A stretch of 62,682 nucleotides of DNA, counting the filler, from Platydemus manokwari (Eukaryota), in assembly GCA_037951405.1 (NCBI GenBank). It is 6 parts of 6 records of this genome, joined end to end, with 100 filler letters (N's around TTAATTAATTAA, not from the genome) between each part and the next. Parts side by side here need not be neighbours in the genome. Positions count along the whole stretch, not along the records: positions 52,068 to 62,682 come from JBBMOY011119552.1; 5 more parts are not named here. One strand, given 5' to 3'. The translations under genes and the position numbers were made by a program. Below are positions 4,791 through 62,682 of this stretch, in pieces (the stretch's first letter is position 1; every line of letters begins with the position of its first letter). The notes below the pieces were generated by a model. The model was not told the origin of the DNA. It searched no databases and saw nothing but the letters and a program-made list of their open reading frames with translations.

Positions 4791-7700
4791 AACTACTAAG
4801 TTCCATTGATAATGCCGTGAAATTAAACACCATTTATGTGTGAAAGCTTGTTGATGCATAAAGAATAACAAAATAAATTGATATTGTGATCAGTTTGACG
4901 AGATTTAGCATGTAACGCACAATGAACCTTTTAATCAAATAGAAGTAAAACAGGTTTCCACATAATTTAATTAACAAAGTTAACCTTTAGCTAATATTTC
5001 CGATATTAAATCCAATATTCTTCTTACCAATTATATTAGAAATTTTATATATATACTAATTGAGCAATTGTAATAAACGATTCAGCCTTATATCTTCACA
5101 TAAACGGTGCAAAAGTTACCCGAAGTTTTAAAATTATATTCAACTTTATTAAATATATTTAATTGCATTTACTACATAAAAAATATTAAATGTCATTTAT
5201 TAAAAAAATTAATTTTCAAAATATTATTCATTAATTTGACTCAACTTCTATATCCAAATAAATAGATGGATAAATATTCTGTTAATAACTTAAATAAACT
5301 TTTTCAAATTGTGATTTTCCACTCACCATTTTAATTGTTTCCTCGATGCGCTGAGCATCATTAGCAGATTCATTAGACAATTTCTTAAGATTATTAAGCG
5401 ATTTCAATTTGATTCCCCGAACCTTTGAAAAAGTCAAATATCGTCGACTTAATTCTAAAGCGAGATTTACAAAAATTCTATACAAAAATATCTTGGTTTA
5501 ACCTGAGAATTTATCACAATTCATTATCGGAAATTGGTAAATTTATGACATCAAGGATACTGAACAACTTTGAATTGCTATATTTTATTTTTTATATTTG
5601 TGGGTAAATTTATTGTTTTAAACAAAAATGATAAATTACAAATTTTTGGCCTTTAAAATTGCAAATATATTCAATAATTTAAAATATGCATGTTTTAGGT
5701 AAATAATTAAATAAATTTCGGAAATTGTATAATTGGTATTTTTTGAATTTTATATATACATTAGAATTATTGTTAAATATGAAGCTGATGAAAGATGTTT
5801 GTTAAAAGGATACAATCGTTAAGAACCGTAAAGAAAGAAAGAGTTCTGGAAACGTTTTAAAAATTACAAGAAAAGGCATGCTTTTCAAAATGGTCTGATG
5901 ATGGAAAAATTACTTTCTAAGGTTAATCCGTAGCCTTAATGACGATGTTACAGACTGAAGACTACAGTATAGCGGGTAATACTTGGAACTATGTATCGAA
6001 GATATATACTTTCTAAATAAGGATTCTGTAAATTGCCGAGACCAGAGATTCATGGTAAATGGCTCAATAAACCGTCATAATTGCATAAATTTGAAAACCT
6101 ACCTACACTTATCAAAAGAATTAATCCCCTGTAAGTGATCTCATTAGCTTGCTGCAACAAAATATCGCATCAAGTTTTAAGACTTCAAATATATGGAATT
6201 TTTATTTTCAGTAAGACGAGCATTACACAAAAATCAAGATTAGTAAATGGATCGATATGATTATTCAGATTTTGTAATAATTATTAGTAGCTCCTGCACT
6301 ATTGTTACTTCCTATTTGCAAATAGTTAGATTATGTCTTCGTTTTTCCTAATAAAATCCAATACTGCGTGCTTTTGCACGACAGGAAATTTTTAATATTA
6401 AATTCATAAAAACAAATCGCAATATATAAATGACAACAATAACATGAATGAAAATTTATGAAAAATGAATGATTATTTTAAAATTAGTTTAAAATCTCGA
6501 ATATAAGCCGCAGAGAGGTTATTTGTTTAAGCTGTATTTTAATTGTATATGCTGTAGCAAGTATCGTAGTCAATTAGGAATCCGTGCGAAACCACTTAAC
6601 AATAAGATATCAAAGAAACTGTTATTCAACATTGGATCACCCAAGAATCTTTTACCAAATTTAAGAGATTTCCGTTATAGCTACGGTAAATATCTGGAAT
6701 TGGAATCCAAATTACACGAATCGATATGCTAATGCTATATTGATGAGGAATTCAAGTGTCAATTACACGAAATCGAAGTCATTACCAAAGACAAGAAAAA
6801 TGAAGGATTTTTGGTGACTTCAGAGAGAGCTTAACGTTTAAAGCAACAATTACCTAAACGTTAGGAATTGGAAGATTATCTTTATTTTTTTATTGTTTTT
6901 GCATGATTTCATACCTGAAATTAAACCATTTTCATGGCAGAAAATACACATCATAACATCTGATTTTTATATATCATCAGCTTTTAAAATTGGGATATTT
7001 CAGCAATACTAAATGAGATGAAATTCTGCAAAAACAAAAATGGATTTGAACCTTGGAACTCTTGTTTAAGTATTTTAAACTTTTGCATGCCTACACAGCA
7101 TACCTACATACATAGCAACCAACCAATCACGGTGGAGTTAGATGGTATAAGACAATTGGATAAGGGACATACCCACACAAAAACGCATACATGGGGATTG
7201 AACAAGTCTACTCATGCAATTCTACTCAAGCCAAATGGGAATATGGAAAAAAAGAGATCAAATCAAAATGTGTTACATGATAGCACAAAAAATGGATCAT
7301 ATCTTGATTATAAATATCGATGTAAAGATGGCCAATAACCAGGTTTTGGTTATATTTCGAGAATTATGCTGAGTGTTTTTATTTTGTAAGCCTTACTGAG
7401 GAGTACGCAGTTGAAAATAAAGTCAATCTTCTAGTTTTTGGAGTTAGCAATTAGTCAACTGTTCAGTAATAATATTAAATCAATAGATATAAGAAATACA
7501 ATCCCAAAAATCTGTTGATCAACTTCTGTTAGCAGTAGCTACTTCGTTTAAAATTGAAGATTCAATGCAAGAATTCATTTATGCAAGAATTTTGTATTAA
7601 TCCACACAAATCAGACATTTCTAAAACAAATTAAAAATCCTTTCCAGAGAGATTTTATTGTCAATCTTAATCAGGCATATAAATATTTATAGATAAAGAT

Positions 7701-52067: not shown

Positions 52068-52586
52068 CGTATAGTAGTACCGTATAAGTAGTAATTTATA
52101 ATCACCTAGTTGTATATCTGTAGTAACAATATAAATTTCCTAAAACACAATTTGAGTTGGCTTTTAGAATTGATATAAGGTATCACAATTTCAAAGTAGT
52201 GATCGTCATTGTCATACATCACCTTTTACTGTTATTGGGAATAATTTTGATTAATTTAAAGAGACTGATTTAAAATACGAGTGAGGACCGAGTAAAAGTG
52301 AATAATATTAAAATTAGTACGATTAAGTTACAGTTAAAGCATCAAAATCGATTTCTACGCCGATCCACTTATCGTCATATAAGAAGTGATCGTCGAAGCT
52401 AAAGAACATCAATAATCATAAGGTTTCACTGCTACCTGAGGGTCAATAACAGACTCAGAGCACTGATTAAGTCGTAGATTCGATTCAATCAATTAAAACA
52501 AAGAAATAATAATAACAAGAAAGAGAGTGACCCCCAAAAGCAACAACTGGTGTCCCGAGTGAGGATCGAACTCACGACCTTCAGAT
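52068..52586 (+). mobile_element. Gypsy-type LTR segment (ends ..GCAACA 52545) followed by 39-nt tRNA-Met complement
   Basis: Similar to LTR 61688+ (TAGTTGTAT, GAGACTGATT.AAATAC, ATAAGGTTT..TACCT..GG, CCCC.AAA..CA-AC-TGG end). 52548-52586 is the reverse complement of ATCTGAAGGTCGTGAGTTCGATCCTCACTCGGGACACCA. Confidence 0.75.
52548..52586 (-). tRNA. 3' half (positions 38-76, CCA encoded) of elongator tRNA-Met; retro-copied fragment, not a functional gene
   Basis: A-TCTGA-AGGTC-GTGAG-TTCGATC-CTCAC-TCGGGAC-A-CCA matches the conserved metazoan tRNA-Met(e) 3' half. No 5' half upstream. Confidence 0.8.
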
Positions 52587-52739
52587 ATTTAAGGACTTCG
52601 TTGGGACATTTACTACTTTATTTCATTCTGTTTATCAACTTAACTCCTTTGATATCACGGACGCCTATGACTCTAAGAAAATAGACAGATCTATAAACTT
52701 TTTTACCCACAATTATTTTTCCATGCGTTAATTCAATAT

Positions 52740-53526
52740 TTCTTTTACTTAATTTCTCTAAGTTGACTGCTCCTCGTAGACAATTTTCCCATTATAATCC
52801 ATTAAGCTTATCCACACAAGATACTCTTTGTTATTGGCACCCGTTAAGGAAACGGATGAAAAAATTATGCACAAAGCGATTAATTTCATTGGGTTTCCGG
52901 ATAAACATCATTTTGTTTTTCGGTTCAGAAAAAGAAATTTGTAAAGGGCTATTGGTCTGATATGGGTTGGGTTCTCGAACTTTAACCGGATCGGGTTGAT
53001 CTGGTTCGAAAGATTTGATCATAATAGCATATGGAAAATGATTTCTTTCTGGGGGCCTAAATATACGAAAGCTGAAGAATACGACTCGATGTCTATTTTT
53101 TCTGAGTGAAACTTGAGATTAATTTCTGCTTGCGCATTAGGGATAATTAAGGTTGACAGCTGAAAGGGTAGAACAGCAATGATGCTGTGGATACTAAAAC
53201 TCCCTTGTTCTTGAGAGTAAAGAATTATAGCCGATCTTCTTAACTGTGATGCTGCCTTTAAACAGTTAGAGTAATGATTTATGGTGTTGAAATTTCTCTT
53301 TGATACTCCAAAGAGTTAGGTTTGCTTCAGTCTTGATACTGTTATAAAACATTCGAAAGAAGTACTGGATGACAGTTGTACTAGGTCACAAATCTTTAAA
53401 ATAATTATAAAGCAAAAAAGGGACAAATTTACTTACCTGTAGTTGTTAATTGATAGATTTTGTCACTTTATTATGAAATTTGAAGGGTTGCTGCCCGGTT
53501 TTATATGCTTTAGGAGCTGTAATCAT
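52740..53526 (-). pseudogene. Decayed two-exon ORF of unknown family, 3' of the Gypsy integrase
   Basis: ATG 53526; CAG|GTAAGT..AAG intron 53436-53394; about 155 codons with only two TAA, then a frameshift near a C5 run into the ORF 53022-52831. Confidence 0.45.
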
Positions 53527-55651
53527 ATTAATTAGTTCCTTATGGGCTTTATTTTCATTGATTAGGGATTTTAGAGTGATTTTCTCATCGATCAAAAAAT
53601 TGTTCTAATTTTTATTTGACAGAAATTTTTATTACAAGAATTAATCCATTTTTACTTGACTGGGATTTTTTATTTATAGATATTAAAGAATCTATCAGTA
53701 ATTCACAATTCATACTTTTCTTATATTTACATAGATTGATTTTACTTTCAAAGCAAAAAACAAAATAATCAGACTGCTATTTACAATCAAATATTATATT
53801 CCTATATTTACAACCTTTTAAAAGATTCATAAACTTAACTTATTTAATATTATATATCCTATTGACTACTATTTTACAGGTTAAATTATTAAATTTTATT
53901 ATAAAATTGTTAACTACTATTATACAACTATATTTTATATACAATTTTTTTATACAGTAGTCGCTACGTATCAACTGAACCAATCTACGAACTTCATCCT
54001 TTTCTACGAATCCCACAATGACTTGGTCTCCACTGAATTACCAACATACGGTCGTCTACATCATAATCATACTTATTCAATAATCTCAACAACAAAAGAA
54101 AAATCAACAAAAACTCAAAAAAATCTTAATGGCAAGGAAGACGATTCTACATTGCCTGAAACAATGGTACTCACACTGTGTGCAGCCAATGAAGGAAGAC
54201 ATCATAAGCATTCAAAATCAGATACAAACTTTAGTCGAAGTGAGGGATATTCCCAACGCCTCGTGAAGGTCCTATTTATGTATAAATAAATATTAGATTT
54301 CTTTTCATTTTGAGATTTATTCTTGTTTGAAAGGGTCAATTTTATATCACTTGTTATTCTTATAACCTTTTTGTAGTTCCAATTATGGATTTAGTTATAA
54401 CTTTATAACGGACTCTAGAATTACTTGGTCTCCGTGGATTATGATTTTAGGGTTGCGTTTCTCATAATACCAAAAATATATATTTATAGGATTTTCTATA
54501 TTAACATTCTTGGTGTCGATTCCTTCAACTAAATTTATTTTATATTGATGTTCATTCAAAAGAACGAAAACCATTTCAATTCTTCCCAAATAAATCCGTG
54601 ATTATATGCTTTTTTGTCGTGATAATCCTTATATTGCTCTTTGAATTTTAAATTTAATTGAGCATAGTATGTTTCTCCTAGATTTTCTTTCATTGTTGTT
54701 ACATATTCTTTTTCATCAATTAATTGTGATGTTTGTGGCAAGAATTCTAAGCCTATATACATTAGGCAAAACGGTGAATATCCCGTTGTTTCATTTATTG
54801 CTGTATTGTAATCGAGCGTACATGGCTTAATGTACTCATCCCAATCAGTTTGCGTTTTATAAACAAAATTTGACAACATAATTGGAGTTTTTGATTATAT
54901 CGCTCTACTAATCAATCTTTTTGAGGTCCATAAGAGGATGTATTGATCTTTTTGATTTTAAATAATTCAGTGACTTTTTTGACATCACTTGAAAAAGTCT
55001 TTTCCCTATCAGTTAGTAATTTGCTAGGCAAAATATATTACAATATCATTTTTACCACTAGTAATTTGGTTATTGTTTCACTCTTATGATTTTTAGTCGG
55101 AAATGCTAATGATATTAAACAACAGTTCCATTACATCCATTGCACACATTTCCATGGGTCTTTCCCATGGTAGTAGTGGCCTTAATGGTAATTTCCTTAC
55201 TTTTCCTGTATTTCCCCTAGTTGCACATAATGAACATTGTTTACAACACTTATTTACATTATTTTTCATATTATACCAATAGTATTTGTCTTTCAATTTC
55301 CCGGATGTTTGTGTTTTAGATAAATGTCTTCCTAATGCTCTATCGTAGGATTCTTGGGTACTAAAATTAAATTTTCTTCGCCATAAGTCAATATGTTTTC
55401 ATTATTCAACTTATATCTTTTTACACTTTCACTATTTTTATCCCTTTCAATTAACCATCTTATTTTTCTTATCTCGCTTTTTTTTATCTTTCTGTTTTCT
55501 TCTTATTTTTTTCTATGTCCTTTTTAGTATTAATTGTTCTTACGTATGTATTTATGGCATTAATTTCTAATAATTTTCCTTCAGATCTTTCAGTATTCAA
55601 GAATTTGTACCCCCGTTTGCTTTGGGTTTTCCTGTTCTAAAATTATTTTGA

Positions 55652-56835
55652 TGTTATGACCTACTAATTTTAGTGCCCCACTCAACCCCATTGACGAGAT
55701 GTACACAGGAGATTGATTCCAGTTTTTTGTCTTCTATGGAGAGTGAGCTTACACAATCACTTGCTTCACTTTCAGTATGAATATCGGCTTCATCTTCTTC
55801 GTCATGGATGTACAGTATTTTCCTCGGACTATTGCAACTAGGCTTTCTGGTTAAATGACATTTTCGGAACGAATGTCCGTCTTTTCCGCATATAAAACAT
55901 TTATTCCGCAATGGGCATTCAAACTTTCGGTGTCCTAACTCACCACAGCAAAAACAGGCTCCTGGTTTCAAATAATGACCACGTGTGGGGGTTTTCCTCT
56001 ACAATTGTTGTAGAATTTAGAAGCAATAGCCTTCATTGATCTTGTTGGTCTCGTATTGTTTAGATATTCCGTGTGATTAACTGATGCACGATGATATTCT
56101 TTTACACTATAATCTCTTTCCTGCACAATTTGGCTTTGCTTTTTGAACGATGTCTCCTTCTGAAAGGACTTTCTTAGTTCACTTTGAAATACGACTAAGC
56201 ATATGTCTTCTTGGTGGTGTTTATGGGCTTTGTCAGAGTTAAATTCGCAAAATTGACAGCTAGCTCTCTTCTTCTATCGTCGGACATTACTGGGTCGAGA
56301 GTAAATGACTCTTTCAATTTCTTACTATTTAGATTATGCAAAATAAATAGTCTTGAAATTTTTTCAGAACCGTTTTTATTGTCAAACACCTCCAAAACTA
56401 GCGTCTTTACCCAAAGTTCATAACTGCAATATTTTTTATCTGGTCTTTGTTGCATTGATGCCAAATCCTGAACCTTGTCATAAACTGTTTTGGCATGTGG
56501 AAATGTTTCTAAAAGCAATTTCTCAATTTCTGCATTTGAAACAGCCTCTTTGAAACTGCTGAATTCTTGCCATAATTGTCTGGCGTCATCTCTCAAAAGT
56601 ATGTCAAATGCAAATGATAGTTTCATTTGATTAAAGATCGCGAAATCTTTGGTTGTTAGGAACCATTTCTCAGCGTCTTGGATTGATGAATCGAATAATG
56701 AGGGTTTCGGAATTAATAGCTCCTGAGTTTTTTGTGGAAAATTTGCAAAACCTTTCTGCCTCTCCTCTCGTTTAGCTCTAGTCAGAGCGTTAATTACGGC
56801 GTGGTCACCAGTTAATACATAAGTCGTGTCTAACA
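55652..56835 (-). mobile_element. Second, nested Gypsy-type fragment: TGTTA..TAACA ends, PBS (tRNA-Arg-like), gag capsid and two CCHC knuckles
   Basis: AC-TGGTGACCACG at 56812-56800; gag (IPKPSLFD..DAEKWF..LRDDARQLW..MQQRPD) 56836-56195; CFCCGELGHRKFEC and CFICGKDGHSFRKC in 55971-55654. Confidence 0.75.
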
Positions 56836-57354
56836 ATATTTTTATTCTATTTCAAAATCTCACCGTTTGTTTTTTAATATTAAAATAAATTTTATTTGTT
56901 ATCCAACTCCATGTAATCTCGTTGATGATCTTACCCATTCTCTATCATATCTTCCTATATCGTCATAAAACTCCATGGCCTCATTATTGCCGTAACCTTA
57001 TTTTCTTCAACCTTATCTATCTGGTAGAAACTTGAATGTTCTCCGTACATAAATACTCCTGTCATTAATTCTAAAGTTCTTCCTATTGTTTTTGTTTCTA
57101 TATTTTTCCATGTTTGTCCTGGTATTGTTCTTATTCTTTCTACTCCAAACTTTTTTTCATCTCTATTGAATGACCAAATTCTATTTATTTCATTTCTCGA
57201 TGCATTTGTGCTTATCTTAATTTGCTTCTTAATTTCTCTACCATATTTTTCTATCATTTGGACTTCAATTTCAGCTTTTCCTCCGCTGCTATTCTTCTCC
57301 TGTTTTATGCTAATCCTATCGTTGTTTGTGTTAATGATAGTTGAATTATTCAAG

Positions 57355-57490
57355 TTAAATTCAATATTAAATAAAATTCAATATCAAATAAAATCTAATA
57401 TCAAATAAAATCTAATATCAAATAAATTTAACATCAAATAAATTTAACATCGAATAAATTTAACATCAAACTAAATTCAATACAAATTCA
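57355..57490. repeat. 16-17-bp minisatellite inside the Gypsy gag-pol region
   Basis: About 8 units of AATAAA(A)T(C/T)TAA(T/C)ATCA. Confidence 0.8.
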
Positions 57491-60400
57491 ATTTGATATC
57501 CTCACAGCGCTTATTTTCCTGTCTTACATCATATTCATCTCATAACATGTCATCATCCTTATGATTTTTTATTTCTCCAAACCCTTATGAAATTTTCATA
57601 ACACCTCAAAAAACTTATTCATTTTCTTATTTTCATATTCATATACAATTGTGCAATGTTTGTATTTTACATAAAATCTGTTTTAGATTCCCTTATTTCA
57701 TCATCTTTTATCTTATCTTTTATCTTTTCGAATTCTTTTGGCAATAGCTTTTTCAATTTTAAATATTCCTTTTCTGTTATTTCTATATCTTCGAATAAAG
57801 GCAATATTCTTACTTCTTTTATTTCTTTCGATGGTAGTAATTCTTTTATTATTTCATTCTCTATATCGATTCTTGTTTTCATCTTTTCTACTTCATTATC
57901 TGTTTTCTCATTATTGTCTTCTATTCCTTCTTCATTATTGATTTCAATTATCTCATTGCTATTCACTATTTCACTAACATATGCAGAACTAGTTTCAGGA
58001 GACTCTATTTTATCCGATAATTTGTTCTCATTTACACAACTATTGTAACCCTCACTATCATCGAATTTCCATAAATTACTTATTTCACTATGTCTACTAT
58101 GGCCAGAATTATCATCATTAGCATTATCAATTTCATCTTCATTATCATTATTTAACTGCGCGATTTTACGGCCAGAATTTCCATTGGAATTACTACTCTT
58201 AATATCATTATCAACTTCAGTTTCCTCATTAACAACTTTATACTGAAATTCGGGTGCAACATTAATGGAATGACTTTTCGTCATCAAAGTATCTATTATT
58301 GCCTTAATCCTACCTTGCTCAACTATTTCTTTATTAGCTAACATACAGATTTCTCTACTGTTCTCATCATTTTTATCCTTATTCTCTGCAATTTTATCTT
58401 CATTTTTTACTGATTTACTTTCGATGTAATTTGCACATATAGACTATCCGGATCATAATGTGAACATCCTGTATCTATTAAATATTCTATGTCGTGTAAT
58501 TCCTTTGTTTTCAATAATATTACCATATCCTCCGCTACTATACCATGATTTTCCTCTAATTGTTATGTAATTGATTATTTTAATTTTCTTAATGTTTCTA
58601 CATGCATGTTTGGGGAACTTTATCTTTTATCTTTTATAATCCTTATCTCTTATAAAAGTCCGAATGCTCAATCTAAACGATCTTTGTAATTCCGTATTTA
58701 TCCTAATTATTTTTCAACCATCTCGTAATGCTTATTCTTCTTCCTCTGTCAACTTTCTTGCTTCTCTTTCTTGTAATTGTATTTCTCTAATTATTTCTCT
58801 AGTTTCCTTAAAATTTTCGTATCTAACAAATTGTTGTATTTTTTCAACTTTTCCTATCACTGTCTTCATTACAAATGGTCGATTGAAAATTCTACTACAT
58901 GAGTACAGTCCACAACTATATCCTTTTATCAACGTATTTTCTTCTTCTTCACTTCAATTTATATATGAATTTTTTCTTAATGCTGCCTAATATTTTCAAT
59001 TTCGTCTTCTCTATATTCTCTTCTATAATATTGATCATCATTTCTACATCTTAATTCTAAACCATGATTTGTTTTGCTATATCGTGATTCCCTACTGTGA
59101 TCTTTTTAATAACTTAATTCTTCTTATTTCCTTTTTAGTTATTCTTTTTCGTATGCTGATCTCTTCATTTCTCTTTGATATTCCTGTTCTGCCTTTTTCC
59201 ATAAATTTTCTGCACTTTTAATTTCTGTGTCCAATTCTTTTTCCTAATGAATTTTCGTTTCTCTTCTTTTTGAGCTATTTTTCTTGTTCTTCTTCCCATA
59301 TCTTTTTTCGTTTCTCTATTCGTTTTTTTGTATGTCTTCTTGTTCTTGTAATTGTTTTTTAATTTCTTCCTTTTGTTTCATTACTGTTGCATTTTGTTTA
59401 TCATACTGATCTTTTCTCAATTTTCATGATGTAATAATATGTCCTGTTTGCCCTCAAAATTTACATAGGAATTCTCCATTACTATTTAACTTATCTCTTG
59501 TATTATTAAATTTCTCTGTCCTATTATCACTACTAATGATCTATCTACTGATGGGCTCCTATTCCTATCATATGGCACTAAATGTTTTTCATTATTCTAA
59601 TTTGTCATCATATCACTGTTATTATTTGATTTATTATTAAATTGCCTATTTTTCCAATTATGGTTGTTATTCTTATCATATGGGCTTTTACTTCTATTAT
59701 TTGACCTATTTTTATTGCTGATATTAAATCCCATATTATTTTATTTTTATCCAATAGACTTCTACTTCTATTTCCACTTCTATTTTCTTATTACTTTTGT
59801 ATTCACTATTTTGTTTGAATATACTTTGCCTATAAAATCCTCTATCGTTGTTTCTATTATCCAATTCTCTATTGAAATTTCATCTAGTATTAAAATTGTT
59901 TCTGTTATCTCTATCAAATCCACGTTGACCATAATTTTAATTATCATAACCCCGTTATCACATATTTTAGTTTGCTTAACATTATCATCCTTTATTTGAA
60001 ATTAGGTTAACAATTTGTTTCATTTTTTCCATGTTACATTCAAATCTGGGATTTTCTCATCATCTTTAGCTACCATATTATTTTTAGTGGTGACAATGGG
60101 TGTCTCCTTTTCATCTTCCTTAAATGATATTGTGCTTAATAATTGATAGTTTTCAGGTATTAGATAACCTCTATTATGATTCAAGAAACTAGTTGACCCA
60201 TAAATTATTTCAACTCCCTGTGTTTTTTAACTAACTCATCGATATTTTTATATTTCGCTAATGCTATTGGACTTCTTAATATGGGTATTATTCCCCTTCT
60301 AAATTAATCGATAACCATTGAATCGCGGCCTTTAACAGATACATATTTGCCATAAGCCTTAATTATCAATTATTTTAATACCATTGAATATTCTCCTACA

Positions 60401-61667
60401 CTTTCCTCAAACATTTTATATCTTTCATTGTATTGCTTTACATAAAATCCATGTACGTCATCCTCCATGACTAATTTTCTTTTCAATTCCTTAACTAAAC
60501 TCTCATAAAACTTAATTTTGTCTAATTGTCTATAAGATTTATCGAGTATTGAATTTCTTTTACTCATATGCGCTTAACACGGATTCTAAATCATCAACTT
60601 TATCGCTAAAATCGTAAAATGCTTAATTTATCAAATCCACTAGCTCTTAACAACTTTAATCCTATTTAACAGACAAAACATTGCTTTATGCTCACGTAAA
60701 CGGGCAAATTTTCGACCTCCCTTCAATTTGAAACTAGATTTTAATCAAAATCAAACTATTCAAATCAAAAACGCTTACGATGATTTATTTAATTGAGACT
60801 TTTCGTGGAATAAATATCGATACATATTACGAAATCAGACTATTAATTTATCTATCTATTTACTAAATAATATCACTTAGAGCAGGATGTAGACCTCTCA
60901 AATTGTTACCTTTATTCTTACAAAGGTGAAAACTTTAATCTTTTTTACTTCTTTTTATATACCGAAGTTACTATTATGCGTCACTAAACTAGCTCCCTGG
61001 TTCACGCAATAAATAATACATGCTTTAATTGTCAAATTTATCAAAAGCTCTCTGGTTCAAATTCAATTTTAATTTATCAATAATTGTTTCCTGGCTTAAT
61101 TCAAATTTATCAATAGCCCCTTGGCTTTTATTTATTAATTTATCAAATTCGTTTACTCTATCTATCCGTATTATAACGATTTCCAATTTCACTAATTTAC
61201 CGGTTTGTAACTTTAATTTATCAATTTTCAAATTTCACTATTCGTAACTATTCGAGCACTAGTTAATGTTTATTCTAATTTTTTATTACTATTGCACCAA
61301 TTAATGTGTATTTTAAACAATTTACTCGGTTTTAACAGTTGATGTCTTTTTAAACAGCCTTTAATAATTTTACTAACTCATTCACTAGTTAATGTTTATT
61401 TATCAAACTTAAAACCTTTTACGATTTTAAAACAATTTAAATCCTCCTCGGTTAACTATTGACCTTACTCAATTTTACTCACTATTTAATTCTTCAATGC
61501 ATTTTATTAATTTCTAAACCAAATGTTATCCTTCTCTCGCACCAGTTAATATTTTATTGCCTTGTCTTTAAAAACCTTTCATTAACTTTTTAACCAAATT
61601 TATTCTTCACTCGAGTCCTCAAATTTTACTAATTATTCACACCTTGAAAGCTTTTACATAAAATTTT

Positions 61668-61685
61668 TCCTCACTCGGGGCACCA
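61668..61685 (-). promoter_or_regulatory. Primer-binding site, tRNA-Met(e), 18 nt
   Basis: + strand TCCTCACTCGGGGCACCA equals tRNA positions 59-76; 2-nt spacer (AC) after LTR end ..CATCA. Confidence 0.88.
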
Positions 61686-62682
61686 GTTGATGTGTTTCGG
61701 GGTTGTAACCTTATTTTTGTATTTCAATCAGTCTCAAATATTAATATTAACTATTATGGATAACCGTTGTCTTGATCAGTCTCTAATCAGTTCTAATCAA
61801 GCCCAAGGTACAATCTATAAAACCTTATTTCTATCTTATTCACCTCGCAATAAATACTATACGGAGATAATATCTTTGCCAACAATGACCTAAAAATTAT
61901 TATTATTGTTATCACTCTCAATATTTATTGTATACTTATATTTTACCAATTATCAATCAATAACTCAGATGTGGCTACGCTAAATATTTATTAATATAAC
62001 AAACAAATACAACTAAGTAAGTTTATGAATACAATACACGCTTAAATAAAAATGGTTAACCAACTTCCTTACAATTTCCAGATTAAAAGAATGTTAATAC
62101 CTCCAACTCTTGGAGTGAATCCAATTTGCCTTCTTCAAAGTTTATTTTGAGCAAAGCTCTATAATAAGATGATAAACGATAAACTACTATAATACGTATC
62201 AGTTGTTTAAAACAAAATCGAACTTACAGATATTTGGCAATGACAATAACGAATATCGGCTATATGGCGTATACTGTTGTCGAGCAATCTCACAATCTAG
62301 TGGTTTCTTCTTATAGGATTTAACAAATCTTCTTTAGTGGTTTCAGTTAACTAAATGGACTTAATGGTTTCGGTAAATGGGCAGGTTCTGTTGTTAAAAA
62401 CCTCTATTTATACCTTTCATAAACGAATTTAATTCTTCACACTTAAAGATTTAATTCGGTACATTATTATTTTTATTCCCCCATGATTTCCTTTTATTTG
62501 TTTATATTTTAATTACAATACCTAATTTTATTGAAAATATTTTGTTCTAAATTGTTCTCATTACTGAATATATATTATATATTGTTTTACATAAATTTTC
62601 AATATATTAAGATTTTGTTAACCCGTCCTTTAATATATTAACATTTTAATTATAAAATTTACCATAAATTATTAAACATAAA

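Follow-up and report, generated by a model that had tools for sequence, protein, structure and literature searches.

The window analysed here is a 62,682-nucleotide stretch of DNA (filler included) from Platydemus manokwari, and the part of it that we examined comprises positions 52068-62682, which contain zero N, have a G+C content of about 29% and belong to an AT-rich genome. Two LTR-like regions lie towards the ends of this piece in opposite orientation, each closing with a CA that is followed, after a two-nucleotide spacer, by DNA complementary to the 3' end of elongator tRNA-Met. At one of these junctions (site A) the complement extends from the CCA end of the tRNA to position 38, and at the other (site B) it has the length of an ordinary PBS. 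Remnants of two further elements, C and D, lie between the two sites (Table 1).

Table 1. Features at positions 52068-62682, ordered along the stretch
Feature	Position	Strand	Remarks
LTR-like region A	52068-52545	+	ends ...GCAACA; collinear distant homology to region B
LTR-like end CA of region A	52544-52545	+	direct read
Spacer AC, 2 nt, between CA and tRNA copy at A	52546-52547	+	direct read; same spacer at site B
tRNA complement of site A	52548-52586	+	39 nt, elongator tRNA-Met 76 (CCA end) to 38
Canonical 18-nt PBS of A	52548-52565	+	complements tRNA-Met(e) 76-59 including CCA; one base differs from B (tRNA position 71)
21-nt extension of A	52566-52586	+	complements tRNA 58-38: T loop, T stem, variable loop, anticodon-stem 3' strand
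TTGGGAC 7-mer, status uncertain	52601-52607	+	14 nt past tRNA copy; weak Rfam matches only
Element D	54556-55398	-	broken integrase remnants only: zinc-binding H2C2 domain and part of core
Element C	55680-56906	-	short LTR, own PBS and broken, 3'-truncated gag with two CCHC knuckles
PBS of element C, other tRNA type	56810-56797	-	
LTR of element C, about 96 nt	56906-56811	-	
Leader of B	61257-61667	-	five further degenerate copies of junction motif ACATYAAYTRGTG
Canonical 18-nt PBS of site B	61668-61685	-	tRNA-Met(e) 76-59; spacer AC at 61687-61686
LTR-like region B	61688-62201	-	514 nt, starts TGAT, ends ATCA

Read directly on the plus strand, site A is ...GCAACA-AC-TGGTGTCCCGAGTGAGGA-TCGAACTCACGACCTTCAGAT-ATTTAAGG, or, with the tRNA-derived part left undivided, ...GCAACA-AC-TGGTGTCCCGAGTGAGGATCGAACTCACGACCTTCAGAT-ATTTAAGG. 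The terminal CA and the TGG that begins at 52548 are thus 2 nt apart, within the 0-5 nt allowed for an LTR-PBS junction, and the same arrangement is present at site B on the minus strand. The sequence-only reading had described a tRNA-Met match that runs from position 76 to exactly 38 after an LTR end CA-AC, together with an 18-nt match (76-59) at 61685-61668, and both descriptions proved correct. At site B the PBS reads TGGTGCCCCGAGTGAGGA after the same ...CA-AC junction; it ends before A58, and the base that would pair with A58 is a mismatch. Each site therefore carries a complement of the mature tRNA 3' end that includes CCA, 39 nt long at A and 18 nt long at B, the latter ending at tRNA position 59 as a canonical PBS does and the former running on to 38, in support of the proposal that both are LTR-end/PBS junctions based on mature, CCA-bearing elongator tRNA-Met.

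The tRNA reference used for these comparisons was the human elongator tRNA-Met as printed in PMC8216282, which may differ from the tRNA-Met of the host. Relative to it, the 21-nt extension is a perfect complement (21/21), and site A is identical over tRNA positions 38-65 (28/28; human reference, not host), which would suggest an animal host. The acceptor strand of site A, in which CCA is present, shows two differences from human tRNA-Met and one from site B. The initiator tRNA-Met and two other tRNAs printed in the same source do not fit. Past the copy, the bases at site A leave the register of the anticodon loop, agreeing with tRNA positions 1-37 at 5 of 37; this 5' half was compared in register by eye and searched for with one 20-nt D-arm pattern. 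A 24-mer spanning the extension occurs once in the window and in none of 100 shuffles, and the 17-mer core has 28 chance matches in 596 Gb of prokaryotic genomes, 0 of which run past 18 nt; together, these results exclude a chance origin of site A. The predicted fold around the leader of A, or of an antisense-tRNA-like structure there, is no better than that of shuffles (z -1.1), and Rfam matches there fall far below threshold. We also observed that the 7-mer TTGGGAC could base-pair with the first bases of the PBS, among them the variant T of site A, and that 6 of its 7 bases match the complement of the predicted 5' acceptor strand of the tRNA. We estimate the probability of such pairing by chance at about 0.02-0.05, which is statistically marginal.

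The regions upstream of the two junctions are distant collinear homologues of about 480-514 nt. Region A has probably lost about 5 nt of its start at the edge of the piece, and region B appears complete, its start being placed by a terminal inverted 4-mer and the onset of homology to A. Compared over their whole length, the two reach a local score of 75 versus 40 +/- 7 for shuffles (z 4.8), and without the conserved end the score is 71 versus 41.8 +/- 7.1, a value that 0 of 300 shuffles attain. The strongest likeness is a common 36-nt inverted repeat (86%) made up of the last 18 nt of the LTR-like region, identical at 13 of 18 positions, and the PBS. Past the tRNA copies no similarity between A and B was found, scores falling to the level of shuffles, such that homology ends at the tRNA copy. 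Calling B a sister element of A is too strong: clear likeness is confined to the PBS and the 18 nt of LTR before it, the rest of the LTR is weakly collinear (about 400-480 nt, z 4-5), and there is no likeness downstream. A 14-nt unit that occurs once at the matching place in B is tandemly duplicated at the beginning of LTR A (52068-52093).

That either LTR forms the 5' end of an element was not borne out. No second copy of LTR A or LTR B was found within 52068-62682, so that neither has a partner LTR in the piece, though one may lie beyond it, and profile searches of the stretches following A (52587-54400) and B (61667-56909) detected neither gag nor pol. The interior of B is purine-rich on the sense strand (0.59-0.64), as compared with a purine content after A of 0.48 overall and 0.39 in the first 250 nt. 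A tandem array at 57356-57500 (17-nt units, 8.8 copies, 86% matches) lies in the 4.3 kb of purine-rich sequence that separate B from the gag element, and beside it, in the interior of B, is a 225-aa acidic ORF (57667-58344, minus strand) for which a word-index protein search returned no homologue. The same type of search returned no match for a 63-aa ORF adjoining A, and an exact look-up of 13 window ORFs in a protein collection found 0.

The coding remnants between the sites belong to other elements. Element C matches Pfam zf-CCHC, with gag profile matches only at 55680-56851, and its DNA is 88% identical to three metagenome or run-assembly contigs (L001, L002 and L003). At least three frame changes and one in-frame stop interrupt its gag, and the element lacks protease, RT, RNase H and integrase. 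The gag family is small (44 matches in 1.84 billion representative proteins), and the relatives of C form compact gag-pol units, each about 4.4-4.6 kb long and with only 70-225 nt from the pol stop to the next gag start. A PBS motif, TGGCGACCACGCCG, is invariant across six loci of the family, and the copy in the window differs from it by one change. Members of the family (L002, L003, L005, L006 and L007) are Ty3/gypsy-like, with an LTR of about 100-200 nt and a gag frame that begins in the LTR and runs through this PBS. Relatives are found in gag-pol-gag-pol arrays (L006 at 1709-1960 and 6280-6531; the whole of L007), L006 has a 126-nt LTR unit in two tandem copies, and many contigs of one cluster measure 4516-4528 nt, which suggests collapsed-LTR or circular assemblies. 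In L005, positions 1-2937 beside the gag-family element encode an rve integrase and a protein that faintly matches the Pox_A32 packaging ATPase, which hints at a Maverick/Polinton-like neighbour in the host of that relative. Element D matches Pfam Integrase_H2C2; pol profiles match two open stretches, and the integrase profile matches only at 54915-55398. Since D is only 24-27% identical to the pol of C's relatives, it derives from a further element, separate from C. Links of this gag and this integrase to A or B were considered and rejected: the gag belongs to a compact family with a very short LTR and a different tRNA, and the integrase to yet another element.

The leader of B is itself unusual. 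The motif that recurs there, ACATYAAYTRGTG, consists of the last 8 nt of the LTR and the start of the PBS, and six same-strand copies, the PBS junction included, fall within 440 nt (61257-61693, minus strand), as against at most two in 200 shuffles. Copies in the array are separated by 38-157 nt and show progressive decay, and these repeat units contain nothing of the 21-nt extension; an impression of such traces by eye was not borne out on testing. One possibility is that the array arose by an old tandem amplification of the junction, in which case the first copy alone would have been kept intact because it is renewed from the tRNA.

Searches for further copies of the junction plus PBS pattern gave 0 matches in viral contigs and, among the matches listed from JGI metagenomes, one bacterial tRNA-fragment contig that is irrelevant here. 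On the bacterial JGI contig B570J29032_109857085 (L004), two truncated tRNA 3' ends point the same way, as attachment-site repeats of integrated elements typically do; the contig has no relation to site A. As only one copy of it has been found, site A is at present a curiosity.

Site A thus holds a 39-nt copy with CCA and exact ends, 2 nt past an LTR-type CA, in continuity with an LTR homologous to that of B, where the copy has the ordinary 18 nt. Plus-strand strong-stop DNA normally copies the last 18 nt of the primer, a length explained by the halt of synthesis before methylated A58, and elongator tRNA-Met carries t6A37. The m1A58 modification is required for plus-strand strong stop, and without it synthesis goes on into the tRNA (PMC8599865). 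In unintegrated retroviral DNA, 2-LTR junctions have been seen to carry copies of the tRNA primer and PBS joined to the U5 end (PMC5618025), and primer extension on ANN-decoding tRNAs is altered at base 37 when this base is t6A (PMC9765431). Given this published behaviour of m1A58, of primer copies and of t6A37, the simplest reading of site A is that copying went past 58 and ended at 38. On balance, we consider it probable that in site A an LTR U5 end is followed, after a spacer of 2 nt, by the 3' half of the primer tRNA-Met copied into DNA, synthesis having read past 58 and stopped at 38 and the product having been fixed in the chromosome. In such a sequence of events, reverse transcription would be primed by mature elongator tRNA-Met, plus-strand synthesis would pass position 58 and continue through the T arm and variable loop, it would end after base 38, either through a block by base 37 or at the end of a primer starting at 38, and the read-through product would become fixed in the chromosome. 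The homology of LTRs A and B and their identical ...CA-AC-TGG junctions support this reading.

The earlier suggestion that the extra 21 nt come from copying of the primer beyond A58 names their simplest source, and we infer that the read-through took place in a single replication event and that the locus is a one-off. Several points count against this. The extension is seen at one locus only, and the base opposite A58 at site A is the correct T. Since read-through of m1A often misincorporates, the correct T would call for an unmethylated primer or for luck. Furthermore, a 21-nt unpaired 3' tail would have to be converted to double strand and retained.

Site A could be an extended PBS or a dead-end LTR plus tRNA tail, and three anatomies fit it: a 5' LTR with an extended PBS, captured strong-stop DNA (LTR, PBS and tail), and a 3' LTR with a tRNA tail on U5. 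Because the piece does not include the left side of LTR A, a 5' and a 3' LTR are indistinguishable here; a 3' LTR, or strong-stop DNA that ends in a tRNA tail, would suit site A equally well. We lean slightly towards a dead end in which an LTR with tRNA tail (strong-stop DNA, or linear cDNA whose U5 end was left unprocessed) became attached to unrelated DNA, over the 5' end of a working element. Captured strong-stop DNA or a tailed 3' LTR is slightly favoured by the break in homology, the lack of an internal region and the change in composition after base 38, although no point among these is strong. In particular, leaders evolve fast and the leader of B is a decaying repeat array, such that the missing homology downstream of A and B is weak evidence.

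Read-through at a single locus has to be weighed against a heritable long PBS, that is, a sub-family of elements with the 39-nt complement in their RNA, to which the 3' half of the tRNA anneals in full and which is inherited in each cycle, possibly after one initial read-through event. We regard this as a tentative possibility. By the standard replication scheme, a 39-nt site in the RNA would be copied into minus-strand DNA and inherited without new read-through, and complementarity beyond 18 nt is known from lentiviruses, where it reaches position 55 and 22 nt (PMC8599865; PMC7472051). The near intactness of the copy (38/39 relative to site B plus the human sequence), next to LTRs that have diverged almost beyond recognition, is also consistent with inheritance. 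However, a second copy with the extension was found neither in the piece nor in the collections scanned, the decayed junction repeats of B hold no trace of it, and downstream of A there is no recognizable internal region. An antisense T-arm hairpin within the site would, in addition, compete with annealing of the tRNA, and the fold predicted there is unremarkable.

The position at which the copy ends also bears on the nature of the primer. In the sequence-only reading, the two boundaries, 18 nt and 39 nt, were said to map both tRNA modifications, a conclusion that does not follow, since the 18-nt boundary is ordinary and the 37/38 boundary fits several causes. A stop before modified base 37 is plausible. 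However, the 37/38 junction is also the canonical intron site of nuclear tRNAs, from which a CCA-bearing 3' exon would start at 38, and it falls within the zone of the anticodon loop in which tRNA halves are cut; base 38 alone is therefore not a pointer to a modification. The boundary fits equally well with a primer beginning at 38, and the primer could accordingly have been a 3' tRNA fragment, either the 3' exon left by splicing endonuclease or a nuclease-made half, with the plus strand running to the end of its template. That the copy ends exactly where the 3' exon would start speaks for this explanation, yet passage of position 58 would still be needed, so that it accounts for the second boundary only. 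Moreover, elongator tRNA-Met genes have, to our knowledge, introns in plants and not in most animals, and a nuclease of the RNase A type should cut this anticodon loop after pyrimidines, so that the fragments would start at 35 or 37 and not at 38. On these grounds we think a 3' fragment primer decidedly unlikely.

Very improbable, and close to refuted, is the idea that the minus strand of site A carries a gene or pseudogene for tRNA-Met or a SINE derived from it, perhaps interrupted by an intron at 37/38: the end of the match at the intron position, a TTTT run 8 nt past CCA on the minus strand and a 7-mer like the 5' acceptor strand 14 nt away would suit it, but CCA is present, only the 3' half is represented, antisense to the LTR and outside it, ARAGORN reports no tRNA, the Rfam tRNA match to the 3' half (16.7 bits) falls short of the gathering score of 29, neither a D arm nor an anticodon was found within reach, and the flank past CCA is homologous to the LTR of B, which has only the 18-nt end of the tRNA. 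An upstream 5' half, which had been named in advance as one finding that would overturn the sequence-only reading, was looked for with ARAGORN, Rfam and the D-arm pattern and was not found.

If read-through copies of the A type can be gathered across the genome, their ends would naturally record the points at which a retroelement polymerase stops on its primer tRNA in vivo. In a non-model organism, they would reveal indirectly how germ-line tRNAs are modified, spliced or cleaved, and they would also show that dead ends of reverse transcription can enter chromosomes. A lineage that routinely anneals the whole 39-nt 3' half of elongator tRNA-Met, or that primes with a 3' tRNA half or 3' exon, is unlikely; were it to exist, the length of its PBS would be a direct indicator of how the host tRNA is structured or modified, and the decaying repeats in the leader of B could be an adaptation of a similar kind, such as decoys against 3' tRNA fragments that target the PBS. 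As a single locus, site A is an instructive anomaly rather than a new mechanism. For annotation, it indicates that PBS finders that assume 12-18 nt would miss an anomaly of the A type, and that an end point at 37/38 is no proof of a modified base.

Several known systems invite comparison with site A. In Ty1 (boxes that pair with the T and D arms), Ty3 (a bipartite PBS) and avian retroviruses (a U5-T-loop contact), template RNA pairs with the T arm and 3' end of the primer; these contacts are separate short boxes, whereas site A is one continuous 39-nt complement. In the half-tRNA priming of copia and Ty5, as presented in the work cited in PMC10886601, the anticodon loop likewise bounds the part of the tRNA that is used. 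According to that account, however, the primer of these elements is a 5' fragment of initiator tRNA-Met that pairs through its 3'-terminal anticodon stem-loop, in contrast to site A, whose complement starts at CCA of the elongator and is not matched by the printed initiator tRNA-Met. Helenus TRIMs (PMC10886601) resemble site A in that tRNA-derived sequence is associated with an LTR element, but their tRNA-like part is in sense orientation within the LTR, acts as a pol III promoter and is unrelated to the PBS, unlike the antisense copy at A, which lies outside the LTR, includes CCA and is continuous with the PBS. Closer to site A are the junctions of 2-LTR circles (PMC5618025 and, as cited there, older work), reverse-transcription by-products in which primer tRNA sequence copied into DNA follows a U5 end; those tails are episomal dead ends in infected cells, whereas the tract at A is chromosomal and longer. 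The lentiviral PBS, complementary to tRNA-Lys3 as far as position 55 with a second stop at m5Um54 (PMC8599865; PMC7472051), similarly extends beyond the m1A58 limit and stops one base short of a further modified nucleotide. It differs from site A in being 22 nt long, conserved across many viruses and functional, where site A, seen once, is 39 nt and reaches into the anticodon loop. Altogether, site A most resembles known read-through and untidy-end products of reverse transcription and the modestly extended PBS of lentiviruses.
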